Below, piece after piece: positions 15,713 through 63,269 of a stretch of 64,000 nt of DNA. How positions within the stretch are numbered: the first letter of the stretch is position 1; the number at the start of each line of letters is the position of its first letter. Where the stretch lies: contig JALMLS010000579.1 of the NCBI GenBank assembly GCA_038496445.1, positions 124,001-188,000 of the forward strand. The letters run 5' to 3'. This DNA comes from Trichosphaerium sp. ATCC 40318. Its lineage: Eukaryota; Protista; Tubulinea. The notes below the pieces were generated by a model. It had not been told where the DNA came from. It saw only the letters and a program-made list of their open reading frames with translations, and did no database searches. Made by a program: the position numbers and the translations under genes.

Positions 15713-16918
15713 TTACAAATCTGACTTTGAGTCATCTTCAATGAATTCATCTTGCACAGCGTTTTCCGGGTCAATACGGTTTGTATGTAAACAAGGTAAC
15801 CCACCACTATCTACTTTCATTTTTATCACGTGAGCGTACAAAGACGCGTCTTCATTATCAAGGAAGCATTCAGAGATGTACTCTGGGAAGTTATAAGTAA
15901 CCTCCATACCAGTAATGTACTGGCAATTATCACATTTTCTTTTCAATTCCGCAGACATCAAATGGTTCATAAAAAAACTGCCTTCTGATCCATACTTTTC
16001 ATTCGTTTTCGGGTTCATTGGATTACCATCTATTGCGTCATCGATATGTTGTACAAGAATATCCCCACTTATTCCTTCATACGTTATACCCGATCCATCT
16101 TGCATGTTTTTAATACCCGATTTCATCACATGCTCGACGCTGTTTCTAAGCGTTTTAAGGCATTCAAAAACGCCCATGGACCACACTTCAGTCCCATTTC
16201 CTTGCCATGTATCTGTAGTAGCAGTCAACCATATATTTGGGTGTAAAGCGTCGAATTTAGGCTCAATAGAACCTTCCAATACGCCATTAACTCTTTCGCT
16301 CATATCATCATAATTTATAATTCCTCTTCCATATCGTAGTCGTAAATCACGTGGGTATTTAGGAGGAGGCACTTCTTTACCTTCTTGATCTGGAGGTACA
16401 TGATCTTCAGGTCGTTCATCAAGTTCGCCCATTTCATCCTCGCTAAACCCGTATTGACCGGTAATCATTACGTTCAAAGGAAGAGGTAGCATACTAAAAC
16501 CAAAAGTGTCTTCTCCAAAGTAAAATATTGAAGACTTTGTTTTTATGGCGTCCTTCTCTTCGCATGCTAGAATCGTAGGTGTACGTCTGTGTATCCATCT
16601 TAGCGCTTTTTTAGCTTGTTTTGCATCTTGTGATAGCTGAACAGGCTCAAAACGGCATGTATCAGGGCTGCCATCGGTTGATGAGAATATTACGACAATG
16701 TATAGCTCTTTTGGTATATTTTTGTTATTAGCGCTGCGATAGTGGTTCCATAGCGTATCACCGTACGAATTCCATTCTTTACAGACAATAGGAACGTTGT
16801 GGAGGGAAAATCGGTCTAAACATGCGAATATTTCAAGCCAGCAGTCTGCGGGTAACGATTCCGCGTCAGCGGAGGGTTTTTGCAATGTTGTTAGCCGTTG
16901 CTTCGTATTATTAGACAT
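15713..16918 (-). CDS. Intronless F-box protein with unrecognised C-terminal region (401 aa)
   Basis: Single long ORF with N-terminal LPADCWLEIFACLDRFSLHNVPIVCKEW (F-box pattern). The remainder was not recognised. Confidence 0.7.
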   Translation of the reverse strand: MSNNTKQRLTTLQKPSADAESLPADCWLEIFACLDRFSLHNVPIVCKEWNSYGDTLWNHYRSANNKNIPKELYIVVIFSSTDGSPDTCRFEPVQLSQDAKQAKKALRWIHRRTPTILACEEKDAIKTKSSIFYFGEDTFGFSMLPLPLNVMITGQYGFSEDEMGELDERPEDHVPPDQEGKEVPPPKYPRDLRLRYGRGIINYDDMSERVNGVLEGSIEPKFDALHPNIWLTATTDTWQGNGTEVWSMGVFECLKTLRNSVEHVMKSGIKNMQDGSGITYEGISGDILVQHIDDAIDGNPMNPKTNEKYGSEGSFFMNHLMSAELKRKCDNCQYITGMEVTYNFPEYISECFLDNEDASLYAHVIKMKVDSGGLPCLHTNRIDPENAVQDEFIEDDSKSDL

Positions 16919-22894: not shown

Positions 22895-24172
22895 TTAAAT
22901 GTTCATCATTGCGTTATTGAGACCTCTTGGTGATTGAAATGATACCTTTGGTTTAGATCTCTCAAAACACGTTGCAACGCCCATAAGAGCATCCAGTCCC
23001 TTTGTTGTTATCCCACAACAATCACTTACAATCAACTTTTTAACTGATTGAATTTGTCTAATTCCAACATCAGTTACTTGGCTACAGTTTCGAAGAAACA
23101 ACGTGTTTACGTTTGTAAGAAACTCAATACTTCTATCAGTGATAGCATTACCGTACGTATATACAGTATGTACTCCAGAAAGACATTGTAAACCTTCTGT
23201 AGTAACGCCACTGCAAAAACCAAGATTAATCGAATGTAACTTGGCTGCTGTCAAGCATTTTAGACCTTTGTCGGTGATGGGATTATCGCGAAGGCTTATG
23301 GTATGTACACCAGCAATAGCAGCAAGACCTTTATCGGTAACTTTGGTGTTTCGTAAGTCTAATGAGTGTACGCCTTTAAGAGCTGAAATTCCTTCATCGG
23401 TAACTTTTGATAGACCTCCAAGATGGACAGAATGCGCTCCAGCTAATGTTTTGACTCCTTCATCGGTTATTTGGATACAACCGTTTAGCGCAATGGTATG
23501 TACACCACTCAAAGATTTGATGGCTTTATCCGTTATCTGAGATAAGCCATTTAAGTGTATCTTTTTAACTCCTTTCAGAGCAATAATTCCATCATCTGTT
23601 ATACTCCTACATCCTTCGAGATATACGCTGTGTGCGCCAGCAATCGAAACAAGTGCCTTATCGGTGACATTACAGTCGCGAAGGCTGATTGTATGAACAC
23701 CAGACAATGCTTTGACGCCATCATCTGTGATATTGCGACACCCCTCTAAATCTATGACACGGACTCCTGATAGCGCCTTAAGGCTTAAATCTGTGATATG
23801 ATGACACTGCCAAAGGTATATTGACCGTACACCGCCAAGGGATACAATGTTTTTATCTTTTACACCAGAATAAGCGAGATTAATTTTTTTGAAGCCTTCA
23901 AGATTTGTGATTGATTTTCTATAGTTTCCTTTTTTCTTCATACGCCTACAATCAACTATAGTGTTGTTTTTGACGCCTTTATAATGCGAAAATTTAGATA
24001 TGTCACGGCTAGATCGTGGTAGCACTGTAGTATAGCCTGTAATGTCGTGTATGGTGTCTTTGAAGCGACGGCATACTTGTACTACCAAGAAACGCTCGTA
24101 GGTTAGATTTTTGAATATAGCGTCTAGAATCTCGTATGGCATAGCTGAGGAGAAGTACGAGATTGAAGGCAT
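22895..24172 (-). CDS. Intronless F-box/LRR (cysteine-containing LRR) protein, 425 aa
   Basis: N-terminal MPYEILDAIFKNL..VVQVCRRF, then about 12 repeats of the type GVHTIxLxxCxxITDxGxKAL. Confidence 0.85.
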   Translation of the reverse strand: MPSISYFSSAMPYEILDAIFKNLTYERFLVVQVCRRFKDTIHDITGYTTVLPRSSRDISKFSHYKGVKNNTIVDCRRMKKKGNYRKSITNLEGFKKINLAYSGVKDKNIVSLGGVRSIYLWQCHHITDLSLKALSGVRVIDLEGCRNITDDGVKALSGVHTISLRDCNVTDKALVSIAGAHSVYLEGCRSITDDGIIALKGVKKIHLNGLSQITDKAIKSLSGVHTIALNGCIQITDEGVKTLAGAHSVHLGGLSKVTDEGISALKGVHSLDLRNTKVTDKGLAAIAGVHTISLRDNPITDKGLKCLTAAKLHSINLGFCSGVTTEGLQCLSGVHTVYTYGNAITDRSIEFLTNVNTLFLRNCSQVTDVGIRQIQSVKKLIVSDCCGITTKGLDALMGVATCFERSKPKVSFQSPRGLNNAMMNI

Positions 24173-31500: not shown

Positions 31501-33537
31501 TTATTCTCTCTTTGCGTTTAATTCTGTAGGTGATTTCCAAGACCACTTGTTGAGATCTATGTTTCCACCTATAGTCAAGAAAAAGATGAGTAGATTCAAA
31601 ATTGGATATATTTGTTTCGAAGATTGCACAGCTTTGTCTTTTACCTGATAGGACAATCCCAACTCTTTCTATTCCTGATAGGGATTTGAATTCCTCAGTT
31701 AATACTACAGCTAGAGGAATAGCGCCACTAGGTTCAACAACCTGAAACAAACTTGATTAGAGTTTTTGACATGGATTGTATTCCAACACTTTAAACGAAC
31801 TGCTTTGCACGTACTATTTTCATACGCTCCCAAATGAGCCTCATAGCATCACGTACTTGATCATCGGATACTGTAATAATCTTCTCAACATGTTTCTAAA
31901 ACGTTTTTCAGCCAATAAGGTAATAAACAACCCAAAACGTAAAAGGCAGTTTTCTAGCTTTAAGACACGTGATAGACGCGAAACAAGGTTTTTTTTGGAA
32001 AGTACGGTCTATTGCGGAAACGTACATGCATTATAGCGAAAGTATTATGACCAAGGTTAGTTCTAAGTAAAGCATCATGTCAGCAAAGTTTTTTTTTGAT
32101 AGTTAATTTTGGAACTGTTCAACAAACCTTAGTCCATCACATATCGTATTAACCTCTTTATTGTGAATAATTTTTCCACTCTCAAGAGACAGCTTAGCAT
32201 CATTTGCACCTAGACGGATATTTAATTTATGAAAATAAAAGTGAACATCACGTGCTGTTCAAAACAAAAAAATTATGGATTTCTACGTTGGCAAAAAAAA
32301 AAGAAGCCACAAATTGGGTTTATTGGGCCTAATCAACACAAAGAATACCTTCAGGCTCTGCTCCAAACATTCGTATATTTTTCTTGATGCCTTTAGCAGC
32401 TATACAAAGCCCAGACATCATCCCTCCTCCACCAACAGGAGCAACAATTGCATCCAATCCTAGAACACTAAGAAAAATACAGTTCCAAAATAGGCTCACC
32501 TTCTGCTTGTTCCATCAATTCCAAACCCATGGTACCTAAGAAAAATTTTAGATTTAAGCGCATCCAAAGAAAAAACGTTTCAACTATCGTTCTTTTTTGT
32601 AGGTTTGTACCTTGTCCTGCTATGACGCGTACGTCATTGGAAGAGCCTATGTACACTGCTCCTGTCTCTGCTACAATTCTATTACATGTTGGTATCCTTT
32701 CAGTTATGCCTTTACAGAAAACAACACGTGCGCCTAATTTTCAAAGTGAGCGAATGGCTTTGTTTAAACTGAAACGACGCGAAAAAACGATCTATCACGA
32801 TAGATGGAAAATAATGGTGTCATATTTTCTAGGCGTACCATATCCTCTAACAGCGCGTACTTTTACTAATATGGGTTATTTAGAAATGTTTAGTAAAACG
32901 GCTGAATACCTTCGGGTGAACTTTCAATCATGACAATGTGTGCAGCTACGGAAGACGCTCAGTTCACCAATCTACCTTGTAATACGAACAAAAAGACCTA
33001 CCTACGCCTCTCATACGAGCCGCTAGTGCTACTGCTTGCGCATGATTTCCTGAACTACTCTATCATTAAAACGAGTGTAAACATTTGGGTTTGGGTCATT
33101 TTGGACGAAAGCAAAGTTGTGTGCCTGTGAGTTGCTACTCCTTGGCTTATTTCCGAATCTTCAAGTGAAAGTACAGCGTTACAAGCCCCTCGGAACTTGA
33201 ACGCTCCGACCTAACCCCATATTTTTTAGTTGAAATTTTTTTTGAACTGATTTTTTTCTCGTAACAAGAGGCAGAGCTTACTTTCTGGAAGTTCTCACAC
33301 TACAAAGTTTTATTAGTTTTAATTTTCTAATCATCGCTTATGCCAAACATACCTTAAAGAACAATTTCCTGCCCGCCATTTCATCAATAGTAGAGCATGT
33401 GAGGACTGGAGTTCGTTTTACCCTTCGAAGGAAAAAAAACGTTAGGAGATGAAGATTGATGGAGTAACGTACAAGCTCTTTATCCTTTCTTGAGCACTTA
33501 ATACATCTTCAAATGATACAGGTAGTGTGTTTGTCAT
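31501..33537 (-). CDS. Serine racemase / threonine dehydratase family PLP enzyme
   Basis: RTPVLT, KCENFQKVGAFKFRGA (PLP lysine), THSSGNHAQA, VIAGQGTMGLE, APVGGGGMMSG, TICDGLRT, VVEPSGA, VLSGGNIDL. Confidence 0.93.
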
Positions 33538-38370: not shown

Positions 38371-38665
38371 CTGTTTTTTTTTAGACATCAGAACCGTCTA
38401 CTAAGTGCAAAACACAGATTTAATGAAAAACTCTGCTAATTTCTCAAGACTGCTTCAGTGAAGGGTGACACAACTACAATGCTTCTAGATCAACTGATTT
38501 GGACGATGTGTTTCTATGTTCTAATAACACAAGTGTGGGTTCTTGTTGTGGACTTGTCAGAAGACAGCCTAATTCGTTTGAAAGGAAGTTGCAGTCTTTT
38601 TTTTTTGTAAACCGTAATACTTATTTACATCCGATCTACAGAGCTTGTATTGACATCAGTTCCTC

Positions 38666-39343
38666 TCACTCATCTTTTTTCTCTTGGGTCTCTTCCTCTT
38701 TTTTGTCTTCTTCTTTTTTATCTGTCTCCTCTTTATTGTCATCTTTCACCTCTTCCGTGGATGTCGCACCCTTTTTTTCGAAATTAATTAATTTAGCTTC
38801 ACGTTTATTTTTAAAGAAAGTGCAATTTCTCGCTTTTAGCTTTTTTAAACCATCTGTGACGCTCAGAAAATATATTTAGCGTATATACGTACAGCTTCAA
38901 GGTCCTTAACTTTTTTTCTGAGTGTTGCGTTCTCTTCCTTGAGACGTTTGTTTTCACTCGTTAGTTTTTCGATATCTAGTGATACATTAGAATACAATTA
39001 ACTGGTTTTAAACCCGTTGAGTTGGTATTTTCTGATTTAACGCACCAACACCAACTAAACCGCCGAAATGTTGTTTAAGAAAACTACGGTGCGCGTTAGA
39101 GATTAAAACCAAGCGATAAAATTAATCTTACTCTTGAATGTCTTTTGGGCGTTCGTTGGAGGTGTACAAGTCACTGATAACTATAAATCAGTCAATATAG
39201 TCGCTTTGTCACCATTTACCTTTTGTGAGTGTATCAATTATGCCAGTAGTCTTCAAGTACGTCTTAAACTTGTCTTTGTCGGATAAATTAGACTATTCAG
39301 GGTTAAAAACAGCACGATTTACGTTTTTTATTACATGTTCCAT
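38666..39343 (-). CDS. c-Myc-binding protein (MYCBP/AMY-1)-like domain with acidic tail; possibly the 5' part of the PARG gene
   Basis: DKDKFKTYLKTTGIIDTLTKVISDLY..ERPKDIQEFLKQHFG..IEKLTSENKRLKEENATLRKKVKDLE follows the MYCBP pattern (FRRYLEKSGVLDTLTKVLVALYE..KP..ALDFLKHHLG plus coiled coil). Confidence 0.7.
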
Positions 39344-39674
39344 TAGGTTGGGTTTGTACGTAATGTTACTAACAGCAGACACAAAATTATGACGTGGGAG
39401 TCATTTTTATTGAAGTGTCTTGACTGTGCAAGTATTCAATTCACTAAAAAAAACTGTAATCTTGTTGTAAGCAGCACGTCACGTGGAGAATAATAGTCAA
39501 ACTTGGGGTTGGCTGTAATTTATATCTGAGGCATTAAGTGCTAATGAACCAGTATTTACTTACCTGTTTCTCGCATGTGAAAAGAATTAGTTTCCTTATT
39601 ATTACTTGTTAAAAAAACTGAGGTCTTGTTTTAGCTCGCATAATTGCTTGGATATAAAGTTTATTTTAAGGGCT

Positions 39675-39725
39675 TCATAACGCCGCACGACGAACCAAAG
39701 AAGAACGGTTCGCCGGTGATTGTCA
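39675..39725 (-). promoter_or_regulatory. Candidate stop-codon readthrough element of PGK (TGA-CAATCA, stem-loop, 15-codon extension)
   Basis: mRNA sense: GCA TGA CAA TCA CCG GCG AAC CGT TCT TCT TTG GTT CGT CGT GCG GCG TTA TGA. 9-bp stem CGGCGAACC/GGTTCGTCG (one G-U pair), arms at 39707-39715 and 39688-39696. Confidence 0.55.
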
Positions 39726-41558
39726 TGCGTCAGTGAGAGCATATAAACCAGGTAATTGTTTTCCTGCAAAAAAAAGAGTTAACACTTTTATGTTTAAATA
39801 GCTTGGAAAGTACCTTCGAGTAATTCCAAAGAAGCACCACCTCCAGTAGAAACATGGGTGACTTGCTTATCAAAACCAAATTGGGCAGCACATGTGGCGG
39901 TATCTCCACCACCAATGATAGACTTGGTGCCGTTTTTGGTGGCATCTACGAGTGATTGAAGGGCACCTTTGGTACCATTGGCGAATTTTTCAAATTCAAA
40001 AACGCCCATAGGACTGCAAACAAAGTTAGTGTTGGTAAAGGAAATAATCAATTATAAGTTAGCTTACCCATTCCATACAACTGTCTTTGCTCTGTTGATT
40101 ACAGTGTTCATCTCAGCGATAGTTGCTGCACCACAATCAAGACCCATCCAACCGTCTGGGATACCTTCTTTGATAGTGACTTGTTTTGTCTAAAAGATGT
40201 GAGGAGTAGTTCGTTGTAAATTACAACAAGAAAATTTATCGTACGTTTGCATTTTTGTCAAATTTATCAGCAATGATGAAATCAATAGGGAAATGCAATT
40301 TGACACCTTTAGCCTTTGCTTTATCGACGATACTTTGTACAATAGCAGCACCTTCATCATCAAATAGAGAAGTACCAATTGCCATGCCGTTTACTACTTT
40401 GAGGAAAGTGTAACTGAAGGAAGTCTAAGAAAAGAACAACAAAAAGAAAGAAGCTGAACCGTTACGTACGCCATACCGCCACCGATGATCATTTCGTCGA
40501 CTCTGTCGAGTAGAGCTGTGATAACCTTGATCTTATCTCTTACTTTAGCACTGAAAGAAGTTAATCAAGAGCAACCCAAGTCATCGTAAATTATTGTTCG
40601 TTTTTTTTGATCTAAAAAATGTACCCTCCAAGGATTGCCAAGAAAGGTTTCTCTGGGGCTTCAAGAGAGTTGTTCAAGTAGTCGATTTCTTTCTTAAGGA
40701 GGAATCCTGATACTTTTTGAGGCAAGTTGACACCAACCATAGAGCTTGAGAAGTGTAAGAACGCAAATAAACGCAAGAACAAATAAAATATTGAAAAAAA
40801 AACGAAAAAAAAAATTATCAACCGTTTTTTTTTGTTTTGTTTTTTATCGTACCTGTGAGCTCTGTGGGCAGTACCGAAAGCGTCACATACGTAAACATCA
40901 CCGAGAGAGCTCAAACGAGCACGGAACTCAGTTACCTTAGCTGGATCTGCCTTTACAGCAGCACCAGAGGCGTCTTTTCCTTTTCCTTCTTCTTCAACGT
41001 GGAAGCGAAGATTTTCAAGCAAGACAACTTGGCCTGGTTTAAGGGCTTTGCACACAGTAACAGCTTCATCGCTGACACAGTCGTTTACAAAGATGACAGA
41101 CCTAATTTTAAACAGTTAGATACAGTTTGAGACATAGAGAAGTGCTCGTACACGCCAAGGAGCTCCTCTAGCTTCTTTGCTACTGGTTTAAGAGATAGTG
41201 ACTCTTTGACTTGACCAGCTGGACGGCCGAGGTGGCTCATTAGTATACAGCTACCACCTGTAATGCATTAGTACTCGAGTACAGCGGAGATTTGTCAAAC
41301 CTTGTGCGAGGACATGCTTAATTGTAGGGAGCGCGGCAGTAATACGAAGTGTATCTGTGATTGTAGTTCCATCAAGAGGCACATTAAAATCTACTCTGTA
41401 ACAATAGTAAATACGACGTTGTTGATGAAAAACAGTTAAAAAACCGCCAGTGCACTATTTTACGGGTAGTTGGTTGAAAATCTCTATTGTACGTACCTAA
41501 TAAGAGCGCGTTTGCCTTTGAGGTCAACCTTGTCAATACTAAGTTTGTTGAGTGCCAT
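39723..41558 (-). CDS. PGK: Phosphoglycerate kinase
   Basis: [111 protein letters not shown]. Confidence 0.98.
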
Positions 41559-41663: not shown

Positions 41664-44600
41664 ATGTCCAAGACTCTCATTATGCCCTTAGGTGCAGATT
41701 CTCCTTTAATAGAACGTGTGTAAGTTCAAACAGAAATTTGTCAATTAATGGTTGTAGGCATTGTTCTGGAAACTATATCATGGGCAGGTGCGGATGGTGG
41801 TATGGATATAATAGGCAGCACAATTACTACAAACTGGGCAAAAAGATTAAAAAGAGCTGTATTAAGCTCAGCACGCATGCGTGTTGGTAACAACGTTGTA
41901 ATTTGGGTATTACACAAACAAAAAGTTGAACTAGTTAACGGTTCCTTCTAGGAGCTCAATCTGGGTAATGGAATATCTACAGAGAAGAAATACCGCTCAT
42001 TACTACGAGTACGTACACTTAGAGGAGAGAAACCGTTCGGTTTAACGTTATTTGAATAGTTCGCATGTGGACGTTATAAGATGATCTATGTTATCAATAA
42101 CTGCGCACAAACAAGAAAATATGGGTCTGGGTTCTTAAATTGTCTTGCAGAGAACACTACGACGCCAATACGATGGTTAAATGTTACTCATATACCCAAC
42201 CTATTACCTAAAGCACCTGGGAAGGATATTACTACAGCTAGAGTCATTAATTATACTTCTACGCGTTGGAATCTTCTTACAGACTTGAGACCATTTTCAA
42301 GCTTCTGTAAGGAGGTGACACTTCTTGACACATTCTTTGAAGCAGGATTACTTGTAAAAGGGTTAATGCAAGCATTATGGGAAGATACGACACTAAAGTC
42401 AGGCTATGGCGCAAAGTTTAGACATTTGGTGCCTTTTGATAGTCTCATGAAGTTCCTAGCGACAGATCTAACACAGCTCAAGGAGTACGTCATTCCCACA
42501 TCGAAAAAGCCTATTTTTATTTTTATTTGCTCGTCTTGAATGAAGTTTTGAGCGCGAATTTCAATAACACTTCAAGGAGTTAAGCACGTGTGTAGCAAAC
42601 TTCACGAACTTGTGTGCAACGCAGATATTTTTGCTTGAGAAATCACGTGTTTCTTATTTTTTTTTGGTTCACTTACAACTTATCACGTGTTTAGGTATTT
42701 AAGCAAGAATGAACCGGACTTTAATTCTTTTTGTATGAAAGAGAAACAAACTGTTTTACCTATTCATGTTGCTGCGGCATTTGGAAGTATTGATGTGTTA
42801 AAGTATCTAGTAGAAGAGAAAAAAGTAGATGTTAACGCTACAACAAAAGTATCAGGGTTAACTGCTTTGGACTATGCTCTATTATTTGCAAAACTTGACC
42901 ATGCAAAGTTTTTGATTGATTGTACAAATTTGGAACAAGATGACGATAAATCTCGTTGTGTTGCAGTTGCTCTTGGGAATATAGATAGAAGCTATGATAT
43001 ACTAAGTCTTGTGGTAGAAAAAGTTGGTGGATGGGATGTTTTGGCCTCTTTGAACTTCAAAGGAGCTACAGCTTTAGATATTTTAACAAGAAACATTGTT
43101 TCAGCACCAGAACAACCTGTTGATGAGAATGACATGTTTCTTCGTGTTCTAGATATTTGTAAGAGTATAAGCGTAAAACCTAAGAATATACTTCAACTAC
43201 TCGAGATACTCCAGCAGTACAAAAGGACAGACCCAGAGTGCGTTTCCTTTTTTTCTTAAAATATTCCTTAATTCTTACTTTGTTCCAGGATTGCATCAAA
43301 GATCTGCGCTATGGTGTTTGAGTTACTTTCTCGTATGGGTAAGAGTAACCCTAGTAGTATAATAGAGATCATAGAGCCTAAGGGGGTTTCTATTGTACAT
43401 ACGCTTTGTGCTACCGAGTATACATACCTTCTAGAAAAAGCAATTGAGTTTGTTGATGATCTTGATATTCGCACAACAAAGATTAGTCGTTATCAGCAGG
43501 GTAAGACTCCATTATATATAGCCGTGCACGAGAGAAGGAAAAAGTCAGTTGAGCTATTATTAAAACGAGGAGCAAAGATCGACACGGCAGATGAGAATCA
43601 AGGTAAACTTAATTCGCTTTAATCTTTTTTCACTTTGAAAAGAATTACTTTCTTTGGTCTCCCTGATCAAGGTTTTATTGCAGTTTGTTGACACTATCGA
43701 ACTATAATTTTTTTGAAGTGTGTCACAATGCTAATTTTTGTGGATAGACGCGCCTTCTCTTTTACACTTGGCAGCACACTTTGACAATAAAGCTATTGCA
43801 CAGTTACTTTTGGATTATGGCGCTGATATTAACGTTGGATTACAAACTACAAGACCAGCAACACCTCTTTCTGTGGCTACTCAAAACAAATCATTAGATA
43901 CTGCAATGTTCCTAATAGAGCGATCAGCAAAAGTAGAAACTTTGGACTTTCAGGTTTGTTTTCTTTCTTTTTTCTTAACATGTACATTCATTGAGTACTT
44001 ACTTGTGTGGTCATAGGGTAATACACCTTTAGTCTATGCTGCAACACACGGGTTTACCGATCTATGCGCTACACTTATAGAAAAGGGAGCAAACGTTAAC
44101 GCAAAGTCACACCAAGTAAGTCTTCTGTTGTTACTAGCTAGGTTTTTAGAACTTTTTTTTTGAAATGAAAGAGTAAAACTTTGTCGTGTTTTGTGCACCG
44201 ATATTATTAATAGTCCAATTTTAAGGCCTCACAAAGCACGGCATCTGCCTTGCACAGTGTTTATAATTGTTGTTTATTTTAATTCTAGGGTTATACACTT
44301 CTTACTATAGCTGTTCTTGGTAGGAATCTTCCTCTGGTAGAACTACTTATAGAAAAGAAGGTTGATATAAATGACCAGAATAAGGACAACAAGGATACAG
44401 CATTACATGCAGGTTGCTCAAAGAGTACTTGTGCTATTGTTGAGATTCTTATTAAGAACGGAGCAGATGTTAATATCCCTGATAGTAAGGGTGTTCGTCC
44501 TCTCATGTTAGCTCTTTTAAGAGAAAGAAGAGATGTTGTTAAAGCAATAATGGCATTATGTAAGGATAAACTTGACTATTCAGCAACAGATGAAAAGAAA

Positions 44601-49633: not shown

Positions 49634-51916
49634 TTACATATGAGGTAAGCGCTCCTCAGAAACAGATACATGACGGCGCTTATGAATATTGGACGAGTAC
49701 GTATTCATATTTACACCTGTAGCTTTTGGTCTATCTGAAATAGATGGGTAGCCTCTTGCAGGTGGACCAGTGTAAACCTATGCAACAAAATGTTAAAACA
49801 ACAACTTTTTGTTGATCAAGGTTACGTACTTGTCTTGGACGTGTTATCTTGTTTTCAGGAGTAGATAAATGCTCATTCCAATGAGCAAGCCATCCTACAG
49901 CTCTAGGAATACAAAACAATACAGGGAACATATCAGTTGGAAAGCCCATTGCCTATTTGAGAGAACAATTGTGAGTCTTTCAAAAACCAAAACTGCAATA
50001 TCAAAATGTGACATACTTTGTAGATTAAACCAGAATAAAAATCAACGTTAGGATAAAGACCACGAGATTTAAAGTAGTTATCATTAACAGCTTGGCGCTC
50101 AAGCTCGATAGCTACTTCAATAAGAGGTTCCTCACCACAAATATCGAACACCTTTGTTCAAGAAAAGTTAGAACAGACTTTGAACAACAAAAAGCAAACC
50201 TCATAAGCGATTTTACGAATGATTCTAGCACGTGGATCATAGTTCTTGTATACACGATGTCCAAAGCCCATAAGCTTCTTCTTCTTATTCTTTACATCAT
50301 CGATGAACTTGCTAACTTCTTTAACGCTTCCAATTGATTCAAGCATACGGAGTACAGCCTCATTAGCTCCACCTACATACGCATTAGAACCAACTTAGTT
50401 ACTAAAAAAAAGGTACCGTGTAGAGGGCCATATAGGGCTCCTGCAGCTGCAGATACTCCAGTGTAAGGGTCAGCCTTCGTACTAGTAACATGGCGCATAG
50501 CGGATGTGGAACAGTTGAGTTCATGGTCAGCGTGAAGGATAAACATTACATCAAGAGCCTTTATGAACCAGGTTAGCAATACAAAAGACAAAAATGTAGT
50601 ACCTTAGCAAGTCGTCTGTTTGGTCTATAATTGGTTTCTTGGAGGCGATCCATCATGTACAAGACTAGAAGACATACAATTAGAATAACGTTAAGGTATG
50701 AGTAGGATACATACAATTCTCTGTGTACGACAAGTAGTTCACTGGCTCGTTGTAGTTTCTTAACAAAAACAATTAATTTAAAAAACCGTTAGGACATTAC
50801 AACAACGAACCTTCCAATACGATGTCTGTACGCAGCAGCTGCGATTGTAGGAAGTTTACCAATAATACGGTATATTTGCTTGTTTCTTACATTAGCATCT
50901 TCGAATATATGCGATCCTTGAAGAGCAGGGTTTGCTTCTGGGTCTATGTGGTACACAAGTCAGAAAGAAGAAAAAGATTTAAGTCACTCGAAATTAGCGT
51001 ACAGAATGTTCCAAGAGCTGCAATTGATGATATAAGCATACCCATAGGGTGTGAGTTATAGCGGAAGGTCTTCCTGTACAAATAAAGTAAATCCAACTGA
51101 ATCATTGCAAGAATTCTCAAAAACGAAGGCAGTTATTTCTGAACGTCAACTGTTGAAGTTGCAGCTGTTCACTTCATCTCAAGAAAAATTTGACATAAGG
51201 TGTTAGAGGGCGTACATGAGTTGCGTGAGGTTCTGGTGGATATAAGTATGCGTCATTATCTTGCTTGTCCAGTCGCTCATTTGTCGCTGATCTGGCAAGT
51301 CTCCGTGAATGAGTAAGAATGCAACCTGAAGTGGTTTTTAATTTTTTGAATTAAATGATAGCGTGACATCGTTATGTGACGTTAGTGCGATTTTATGTCA
51401 CCCATTAGAGTCTTGAGCGTACCTCAAGGAAGTTGGACTTTTCTGCAAGCTCTTCAATAGCGTATCCTCTGTATCTATTTGAAAACGTTATTATACCATA
51501 GATGTAGCGTGGAAACGCACCTTAAGATACCCTTTTCTCCGTCAATGTACGTGATGGCCGATTTTGACATACAAGTGTTTTTATAGCCCGGATCGTACAA
51601 ACGAAGCCCAAGTTGCTTAAATTGCATTGCCTATGGTTGTTTAGTGGAGTTTAGCCATCACCCAAAGTACTTTAAGAACATCGCCGTATTTGATGGGTAC
51701 ACGCGCTTTTTTGCCAGTACGTGAGTCTATTACAGTGACGTATGGTCTAGAAATTTCAGTTAGGCAATAAACAAGCGTTATAAACATGTAAACGCACTCT
51801 GGATCCTCCGTGTTGCGTTTCGCAGTAAAATTACGCTCTTGGCGGCCAAATGGTGTATTAGGCGCTAAGTGACGCACCACAGTTTGTATTCGACGGTTTG
51901 CTGTTTCCCTGTCCAT
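49634..51916 (-). CDS. Citrate synthase, peroxisomal type (PTS2)
   Basis: [27 protein letters not shown]-like [66 protein letters not shown]. The N-terminal RIQTVVRHL fits PTS2 (R-I-x5-H-L). Confidence 0.96.
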
Positions 51917-59829: not shown

Positions 59830-60847
59830 TCATTGTTCGTGAGGGATAAAATCTAGGTAATTCCGGTGTTCCTCACCTCCAACGAAGTAATAATGCTCTA
59901 TCACTCCCACAAGGAAATGAAACTTTTTGTAATCTCCTTCAAGCTTACCGTTGACATAAGTACATAGCTCCTTTACATTACCATTAGAATGCCATGACTT
60001 ACACTCTCCCTCTAATTTATCATTGGCATAGTGGCTCTGTATCTCTATTTGTCCATTGTCGTGCCACTCTGTGTTATCTCCTTCCAGTTTGCCATTGATA
60101 TAATGGCAATGTCTGCGCAGGTGTCCATCATCATACCACTCCTTGCATTCCTTTTCTTCTTTGCCATTAACATAATGTGACTCTAATCGCAGCTGTCCGT
60201 TGTCAAACCACTCTTTGTGTCCGCCAGTTTTTTTACCATTAACAAACGTACACTCCGTTTTTAGTTGTCCATTGTAATGCCACTCCTTGAATTCTCCTTC
60301 AATATTGCCTTTGACATGCATGAAATGTGTTGACAATTGTCCATTACTGTACCACGAACTGTTCTCTCCGTCAAGTATGCCGTTCCGACAATTGATTACA
60401 GAAAGCAATTTACCGTCGTCATGCCAATACTCTTGCTTCCCTTCTGGCTTTCCATTAACATAGTGGCAGTGAACTCCAAGTTGATTATTCTTATACCAAT
60501 ATTTGGAATCTCCATGACGTTTACCGTGTCTCCAATATTCTAGAGCAGCAATACCACGTATTTTAGAGTTTTCATCGATAAATCGTTGTTGTATCCATTT
60601 TCCATGTTTTTTTAAGTCAGTATCGAACCGTGTAGTCGTTGCTGTATGTTTAGACAAGCATGGCCACTTTAAATTCACTTCAAGGTCCAAATCGCACATA
60701 ACAATATGTAAATCAACTGGGAGGTGTAGTAGTAGCGTTTTAGGTAAAAACGGTTTTCCGTTATCTCCTTTCGAGGCATTTAGCTACAAGTATGCTTGTG
60801 AGACACTGTGCGTTATATTTTAAGTAAAGTACCTTGCGTTTTGCCAT
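59830..60847 (-). CDS. MORN-variant (YwqK-like) repeat protein with degenerate N-terminal F-box-like motif; one 5' intron
   Basis: MAKRK|LNASK..LLHLPVDLHIVMCDL..CLSKH, then about 9 repeats of the type GKxEGExKEWHxNGQLxxxCxYVN. Confidence 0.85.
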
Positions 60848-61266: not shown

Positions 61267-63269
61267 TTATTTGTAGTCCCACACTCGACTTGAAAAGTCT
61301 CCAGCACCGGAGACAAATCTATTTGTACCATGGCCTTGACTGCATGCAATAGAAATCACAGAATTTCTATGACCACGTAGTACAAGCTGCCCAGTTGCAC
61401 GATCTATATGTGTATTCCATACACGAATTGATTGATCTTTACTACCACTCATTAACCAAGAACCACATGGGCTGTATGATAATGTGAGTACAAAGTCCTT
61501 GATTAAGAGAGTTAGTTAAGTTCAAAAATGATGTCACTACTAATAAAAAAAAGCACGTGAAAGATAAAACACGAAATGATTTTCTTTCTTTTTTCTTCTT
61601 TTTTGTCACTGAGTTAAAAATACTACGTACTTGGTGGCCTTGTAACGTTGCTTTGCAATTATCAGTACCACTTCCTCTTATGTCCCATATCCTTACAGTT
61701 TTGTCTAATGAAGAAGATGCCAGAGATTTTTTATCAGGAGAAAAAGCAACAGAGTAAACGCTATCTGAATGACCTGCATATCTATCAAGAAAAAATCCAT
61801 TTCTTAAATCCCATAGCCTAACCATCTTATCAAGAGATCCAGCAGCGATTAAATCACCAGCATGGTTAATTGATACAGATGTAACACCCTCAAGAGGACC
61901 TATTTGTTCATCGCCAAGAGTATGCAAACACTAAACAGAAATTAACAAAGAGAAGCTGCATCTAAGCGAAGAAATAGTATCTTCGTTTTTGTGATACCTT
62001 TCCAGTTTCTAAACAAAACGTGAGTGAAAACTTCTGAAAGAAAAAAACTTACCAATGTCCCACACTCTAACTGTCTTATCCCCAGATCCAGAAACAAGTG
62101 TTTGTCCATCAGGAGATATATCTACACCACGTCAAACTGTTAAAAACGCTCAATAATCTTGACATACCAATCGAATAGATTGGCTTTGTGTGACCCAAAT
62201 ATCCTCGACAGAAACTCTTTGTAGTGATGTTCCACAATTTTAACTTCTCTTCACCACCAGAGGCAAGCAGATTAGAATTAGGAACAAATTTTACACCTCT
62301 AAAATAAGCATCTCCTTCACCAGATACAACACTCTTATCTCTAAATGAACTAACGAACGATTAGCATTTCAGAAAGTTTTGCTCTTTTTTTTTTTGTAAA
62401 CGTGCTGTATGTATTTACCAGTATCCGCATCGATTACATTAGCCACACGGTTACCTTAAGAAACGTTATCGATTGTAATGATCGTATATCCCATTTAATT
62501 ACCTCCAGTGACAACCATTTTACCATCATTGGATATATCAACGGCGCACACGACGCTAAACAAACAATTAAAAAAATATATCCATTCAGACCCGATAAAG
62601 GTTTTATCTCTTTATCATCACGTGACGCGAAAAAATGAAGTAAAAAATGAAGAGCTAGGGTTTACCTTGCGTGTTCTTGAGTGTGCATCAAATTTATTAT
62701 CGGCTCTTTCGTCATAGATGGGTTGTAGCTTGTTTTCAAACATTTAGAATCAACCATACTACAAAAATTGCTTTTTGGTAATTTTTATCTTACCTCACAA
62801 CCCACTCCTTCGCATTTGTTTGACTTCTCTCCACAAGCTGCCTATACGTGTGTTAAACCTTATGCGCAAGTATTTATACGCTCTACAAGCAGTCGAGCCT
62901 AAAAAAAAGTTTTTCTTCTTCCTGTTATTTACTTTGAATGGTTTCCGTTTCCGAAACGCCTCATTGATAACATAGCTGTTGGCGTAGTCGTTCTCTGCAT
63001 CACGTGATTCGAAGGTGTTGTAATAGTATTTCTGACATTTCTTTCAGGCTGTGGAGCGTCGTTGTTGTTTTTATACAGAGCTTGACGGTATTTAACGATT
63101 TAAAAATAAATAGGCTTAAAAAAGAGCTACCATCTATTATTTCAGCCTGTATATGCGGAATAGAGCGCGTAGCCCCTTGACCATCAGTTACAGATATTAG
63201 CATCGAATTCGCCAAGCCAATAAGCTCATTACCACCAAGCTCAAGCACGGAAACTACTCGTTGTATCAT
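61267..63269 (-). CDS. Tup1/TupA-like WD40 corepressor; start uncertain
   Basis: EWVVSYNP..LMHTQEHASVVCAV, LVSGSGDKTVRVWD, GVTSV..IAAGSLDKMVRLWD..GFFLDRYAGHSDSVYSVAFSPD, GHQDFVL..WLMSGSKD, LRGHRNSVISIA, SGAGDFSSRVWDY. Confidence 0.85.

Follow-up and report, generated by a model that had tools for sequence, protein, structure and literature searches.

[quoted passage not shown] ATCC 40318

The PGK gene of Trichosphaerium sp. ATCC 40318, located within the 64,000-nt stretch of genomic DNA that was analysed in the current work (hereafter referred to as the window), ends in a UGA stop codon which is directly followed by a CAA-UCA hexamer and, after a short spacer, by a GC-rich stem-loop. This stem-loop is exceptionally stable and specific to the mRNA strand, and the whole region is present in the mature mRNA. 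Considering that both the context and the spacing of these elements match published type I and type II readthrough signals, the best single reading is that the PGK UGA represents a candidate leaky termination site from which a minor extended form of PGK would be produced, a reading to which a probability of roughly 0.45 is assigned. Beyond the elements themselves, we infer that the PGK stop may be read through often enough to matter and that a use may exist for the extension.

The PGK gene is carried by the minus strand, and its structure is as follows (coordinates are those of the window):

39723..41558, minus strand: PGK gene, 10 exons, 414 aa (spliced model and RNA contigs)
41558-41497, 41395-41301, 41257-41152, 41101-40853 and 40744-40625, minus strand: PGK exons 1-5
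40550-40470, 40413-40245, 40189-40068, 40013-39814 and 39763-39723, minus strand: PGK exons 6-10

The introns are 43-108 nt in length and the majority of them begin with GTACG or GTAAG. Eight of the nine were recovered as joints in spliced RNA contigs derived from four public runs, each belonging to a different study, while the ninth (40745-40852) is supported by adjacent contig pieces and not by a joint. The latter, being intron 4, contains an A10...T9 inverted repeat as well as long A/T runs.

The encoded protein is 100% identical to P0273, an ORF from an MMETSP transcript whose annotation gives it as a complete ORF of 414 aa; the TGA at 39725-39723 is accordingly the annotated stop. The elements surrounding this stop, listed in the order in which they are encountered by the ribosome except where they overlap, are the following:

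39723..39725, minus strand: annotated PGK stop UGA, next base C (sequence and spliced model)
39717..39722, minus strand: CAA-UCA hexamer, a complete CAR-YYA match (sequence; motif as in PMC3542737)
39678..39722, minus strand: potential 15-codon readthrough extension QSPANRSSLVRRAAL (sequence)
39688..39715, minus strand: stem-loop with 5' arm 39715-39706, 8-nt loop 39705-39698 and 3' arm 39697-39688 (RNAfold)
39672..39740, minus strand: extended 69-nt imperfect hairpin (fold of 81 nt around the site)
39677-39675, minus strand: second in-frame stop UGA-A, with a back-up UAA two codons further on at 39668-39666 (sequence)
39660..39665, minus strand: AAUAAA poly(A) signal (sequence)
39629..39647, minus strand: end zone of PGK RNA contigs from 4 runs, the likely mRNA 3' end

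The longest PGK RNA contigs stop at 39629-39634, which corresponds to 26-31 nt beyond the AAUAAA, and the PGK 3'UTR amounts to approximately 93 nt, only about 45 nt of which lie beyond the second UGA. Since the RNA contigs reach 39629-39647, the whole extension is present in the mature PGK mRNA. Polyadenylation ahead of the second stop, which the earlier note had named as speaking against an extended product, is not what these contigs display, as those from all four studies pass the second UGA. Regarding alternative splicing or early polyadenylation at the PGK 3' end, the constitutive last intron alone was seen among the contigs, which may miss rare isoforms.

Considering that hairpins are present beside the UGA in some selenoprotein mRNAs (PMC3159437), it may be asked whether the PGK UGA is recoded as selenocysteine, or represents a sense codon of a variant genetic code, an explanation that is effectively refuted by several lines of evidence. 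No match to any Rfam family, SECIS included, was obtained for positions 39300-40000 at E up to 10, and the short UTR remaining past the second stop also argues against selenocysteine incorporation. A variant code is contradicted by both Trp residues of PGK being encoded by TGG and by the presence in the window of long ORFs without in-frame TGA, while recoding of either kind is at odds with the PGK C-terminus, which aligns with the regular C-termini of other PGKs. In the neighbouring genes TGA serves as an ordinary stop; a survey of stop codons based on the ORFs of the window proved too noisy, and the five gene ends that could be trusted comprise two TAA and three TGA codons.

The placement of the TGA directly before CAA TCA (39725-39717, minus strand), as described in the earlier note, was confirmed. 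The hexamer CARYYA following a stop constitutes the type I readthrough motif, which is reported to promote readthrough of UGA as well as of UAG (PMC3542737). Type II signals consist of UGA-C and a stem of 10-14 bp positioned 7-9 nt after the UGA, and were found to increase readthrough 3- to 14-fold in reporters (PMC3159437). At the PGK stop, UGA-C is followed, after a 7-nt spacer (CAAUCAC), by a stable stem of 10 bp that is formed on the sense strand only. The three readthrough hallmarks for which the site had originally been singled out, i.e. UGA-C, a full CAR-YYA and a stable stem 7 nt downstream, are thus all present, and, judged by its sequence, the PGK stop falls under the definitions of type I and type II signals at once.

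The resemblance to each of these signals is nevertheless not complete. The likeness to the type I (tobamovirus-type) context resides in the complete match of CAA-UCA to CAR-YYA after the stop; the latter context is that of a plant virus and its natural examples mostly involve UAG, whereas the PGK case concerns a candidate leaky UGA in a cellular gene of a protist. [quoted passage not shown] The published type II stems usually enclose loops of approximately 100-270 nt and are accompanied by compensatory substitutions, whereas the PGK hairpin is compact, with a loop of 8 nt.

Based on the base composition of the window, TGA-CARYYA is roughly estimated to occur by chance at about 0.1% of gene ends, and its combination with a hairpin of a kind that itself arises at about 0.1% would not be expected by chance, the rough estimate being less than one instance per genome. 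If the definition is relaxed as far as possible, to a hairpin behind TGA-C, a genome would be expected to contain one or two such genes. The bare TGACARYYA motif is not enriched in the window, where five copies were found versus 6.85 expected.

For the stem-loop fold, the input was restricted to the RNA lying beyond a ribosome that is paused on the UGA. The earlier note had proposed a GC-rich hairpin of 9 bp with a 10-nt loop following a 7-nt spacer; the GC-rich stem and the spacer were recovered, while RNAfold corrected the dimensions to a stem of 10 bp, two of which are G.U pairs, and a loop of 8 nt. In the sense orientation the stem-loop has a predicted folding energy of -20.1 kcal/mol (z = -3.47), with 0 of 200 shuffled sequences being as stable. 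The antisense sequence of the same region reaches -14.6 kcal/mol (z = -1.15) and is equalled by 23 of 200 shuffles, and this unremarkable antisense fold indicates that the structure is specific to the mRNA strand. The extended imperfect hairpin of 69 nt, in which the end of the PGK coding sequence, together with the first UGA, is paired with the region around the second UGA, has a value of -26.9 kcal/mol (z = -3.56, 0/200 shuffles as stable).

When 25,584 segments of 40 nt from both strands of the window (128 kb) were ranked by fold stability, the PGK hairpin came among the top 3. When stop triplets in any frame were surveyed, just 8 of 7,458 (approximately 0.1%) were followed, between +8 and +51, by a fold of equal stability, and among the listed stop triplets followed by folds down to -14.5 kcal/mol the PGK stop alone closes an open frame exceeding 30 codons, the one exception being an out-of-frame TGA located 7 nt upstream of it. 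Both the fold ranking and the stop-triplet survey therefore bear out that the co-occurrence of these hallmarks at a genuine stop is statistically unusual. The GC peak reported for this region is likewise real, the GC content being 0.57 in 39670-39729 versus 0.27-0.30 downstream, and the hairpin sequence is unique within the window. Two local hairpins stand out as the most stable in the window, with values of -16.7 kcal/mol (33171-33210, minus strand) and -20.7 kcal/mol (49720-49775, plus strand), and both lie outside recognised long ORFs.

A comparison was also possible with a strain designated ‘organism B’, which is diverged by approximately 1% and whose contig departs from the window at 8 sites within the PGK coding sequence. 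Each of the eight variants listed for the two strain-B runs taken together falls on a third codon position and is synonymous, the synonymous divergence being approximately 3%. The strain-B 3'UTR showed 0 differences over 91 nt versus approximately 2.9 expected at the synonymous rate (P ~0.055), a suggestive but weak hint at constraint on the whole UTR, and not on the frame.

These data bear on whether the arrangement represents a pure coincidence, in which a chance inverted repeat happens to lie behind a chance TGA-C stop and has no function at the level of either RNA or protein. Such a coincidence is made easier to accept by the fact that the site was selected post hoc, out of more than 1,000 windows scanned, and by the lack of enrichment of the bare TGACARYYA motif, but it is rendered improbable by the statistics of the hairpin (z of approximately -3.5, none of 200 shuffles as stable, top 3 of all 40-nt windows), by the asymmetry between sense and antisense folds, and by the absence of any 3'UTR change against a synonymous divergence of approximately 3%.

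If the PGK UGA is leaky, the termination site would operate as a two-part signal composed of the UGA with its tobamovirus-type CAA-UCA context, followed by the GC-rich 10-bp stem-loop, the latter being expected to sit at the mRNA entrance of the ribosome while the UGA occupies the A site. Ribosomes that pass the UGA would then unwind the hairpin and add 16 residues (X-QSPANRSSLVRRAAL) before terminating at the UGA-A, with the UAA being available as a back-up. The predicted product would be a low-abundance, C-terminally extended PGK that exists beside the normal 414-aa enzyme.

The sequence of the extension itself has to be interpreted with caution. The earlier note had pointed to a frame that stays open for 15 codons before the next TGA; such a frame is present, yet it carries no information, since across the GC-rich hairpin none of the three frames is interrupted by a stop, and the open frame of the extension is a by-product of GC richness. 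NCG codons account for 4 of the 15 codons of the extension (one CCG and three GCG) versus 1 of 414 in the strongly biased PGK coding sequence, and neither frame-specific openness nor codon usage supplies a coding signature. The extension looks moulded by pairing and not by translation, its NCG use fitting a structure-shaped non-coding sequence.

It is accordingly quite possible that the stem-loop is a 3'UTR element with a role at the mRNA level, for example in the stability of a very highly expressed transcript, in its binding of proteins or in the formation of its 3' end, in which case the UGA-CAA-UCA would be coincidental and any readthrough negligible or a tolerated by-product. This explanation, which ranks close behind a leaky stop, draws on the exceptional strand-specific structure being situated within a 93-nt 3'UTR just upstream of the AAUAAA, on the non-coding-like codon usage of the extension, and on every frame being open with nothing to mark frame 0. 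Because 3'UTRs are very short here (that of the neighbouring gene being approximately 20-40 nt), any 3'UTR hairpin would moreover be found near the stop anyway. What such an element does not explain is the full CAR-YYA after the TGA, which has a chance of approximately 0.1% per gene and, when combined with the canonical 7-nt spacing, demands a second coincidence; furthermore, none of the other real stops in the window is followed by a comparable hairpin, and the Rfam search described above did not return a family to which the element could belong. If the hairpin serves the mRNA instead, what remains would be a gene with high expression that carries a strong structure in its 3'UTR, a matter of local interest only.

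Searches for related PGKs placed the gene in an isolated position. With exon 4 as query, nothing close was retrieved from 1.84 billion representative proteins, and a profile search, followed by a search with P0273 as query against 5.8 billion proteins, produced a nearest PGK with 65% identity. Exon 9, when compared with exon-sized gene calls, gave a best match of 74% over 66 residues, most of its matches being animal-type. In the resulting tree the PGK of the window is found on a long branch with EukProt P0404 as its sister (SH-aLRT 93), and the label ‘amoebozoan-like’ that had been attached to the organism is not established by such a placement. When the 3' ends of five PGKs from distant lineages (L001-L005) were inspected, neither the context nor the extension nor the hairpin of the PGK of the window was shared by them, a metagenome scan with the C-terminal PGK exon gave 0 matches, and one with the hairpin arms gave a single chance match inside a bacterial gene.

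The clade that includes the PGK of the window also contains bacterial sequences, for example from a Verrucomicrobiota MAG, and on bacterial GC-rich contigs of this clade (L003) the next gene begins 3 nt past PGK. These bacterial sequences reflect either the presence of a eukaryote-type PGK in bacteria or a transfer in one or the other direction.

With respect to a possible use of the extension, PGK belongs to the small number of enzymes with a documented readthrough isoform, and the precedent that had been invoked is well founded in the literature, as Ustilago maydis produces a readthrough isoform of PGK that bears a PTS1 (PMC3798809). Cryptic PTS1 motifs acquired by readthrough have been described for Ustilago PGK and TPI, as well as for LDHB and MDH1 (Freitag 2012; Stiebler 2014, PMC4207609; Schueren 2014, PMC4359377). 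The present case resembles these fungal and animal enzymes in involving the same enzyme (PGK), a short extension, a candidate leaky UGA and a small-small-Leu end that is preceded by basic residues, whereas they rely on UGA-CUA and on consensus ends (such as SRL, SKL or AKL), to be compared with CAA-UCA plus a hairpin and with AAL in the PGK studied here.

Proposed as a PTS1-like tripeptide, the AAL end does not conform to the consensus (S/A/C)(K/R/H)(L/M) (PMC3798809), as Ala and not K/R/H is found at position -2. AAL was encountered in the literature searched solely for a thiolase of the red alga Cyanidioschyzon, where it was put forward speculatively as a ‘possible unknown derivative’ (PMC3178647). 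The UGA-CUA element is common to the known peroxisomal readthrough genes (PMC4207609), and the leaky UGA-CU(A) context is not found at the PGK stop, which has UGA-CAA. The two other frames after the PGK stop contain no PTS1.

As a sub-case of a leaky stop, it has been considered that the readthrough extension might act as a working PTS1, non-canonical in the form RRAAL, and thereby distribute PGK between cytosol and peroxisome as in Ustilago. The fungal precedent, the basic residues at -4 and -5 with a terminal Leu, and the existence of some animal PGKs that end directly in -AKL or -SKL would all be in keeping with this proposal, the last of these implying that a peroxisomal PGK is not exotic. 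The lack of the basic -2 residue required by the consensus, the merely speculative standing of AAL in the literature searched and a stop context other than UGA-CUA make it unlikely, and peroxisomal targeting of an extended PGK is therefore retained as one, doubtful, possibility.

Among the PGKs P0305, P0433, P0324, P0301 and P0304, those that cluster with a sponge sequence end in -AKL and those of Trichoplax in -SKL; being located on the normal C-terminus, such a canonical PTS1 suggests that the whole enzyme may be peroxisomal in early-branching animals. The AKL-ended PGKs (P0305, P0433 and P0324) had been considered as close relatives carrying a direct PTS1 and were rejected as such, because the tree groups them with a sponge PGK, and they consequently say nothing on the lineage of the PGK of the window.

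A short C-terminal extension also separates organellar from cytosolic PGK in Trypanosoma brucei, where the glycosomal PGK-C is encoded by a separate gene and does not arise by readthrough. The likeness to the PGK of the window is limited to the short C-terminal extension, the difference being a separate gene in the former and candidate readthrough in the latter.

Functional readthrough in cellular genes is known mainly from fungi, insects and mammals, and cellular cases assisted by a stem-loop are few. If the PGK UGA is indeed leaky, it would constitute a case of cellular readthrough with virus-like signals, unusual in that both types of signal occur together and in an isolated lineage. Upon verification, the extension of the same enzyme that is extended in fungi would indicate that dual localisation of glycolytic enzymes is repeatedly attained by this route, and the site would represent a very compact natural readthrough cassette of approximately 40 nt. 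In its most far-reaching form, to which only a slim chance is given, the argument would be that a free-living, phylogenetically isolated marine protist carries a virus-like cassette of CAR-YYA and stem-loop on PGK, that this cassette yields a regulated extended isoform with RRAAL as a lineage-specific peroxisomal or other sorting signal, and that partly organellar glycolysis has thereby arisen independently a third time, in addition to the cryptic PTS1 enzymes of fungi and the glycosomes of Euglenozoa.

Several further observations concern the surroundings of PGK. Approximately 230 nt downstream of PGK a small gene is arranged in tandem on the minus strand (38649-39400), consisting of six exons with introns of 39-122 nt, all of which were confirmed by RNA contigs. 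Its stop is TGA-G and its 3'UTR is very short, and it encodes a coiled-coil protein of 118 aa whose tail is acidic and which may resemble c-Myc-binding protein (AMY-1). Between PGK and this downstream gene, palindromic CACGTG/ACGTCA-like motifs are found at 39385-39410 and 39468-39490 (CCACGTGACGTG; TGACGTGGGAGTCA), which are possible promoter elements of the bZIP/bHLH type. The neighbouring ORFs at 15713-16918, 22895-24172, 59830-60699, 42687-43259 and 61442-61927 encode ordinary eukaryotic domains, with F-box, F-box plus LRR, MORN repeats, ankyrin, WD40 and a CD36 fragment being represented across them.
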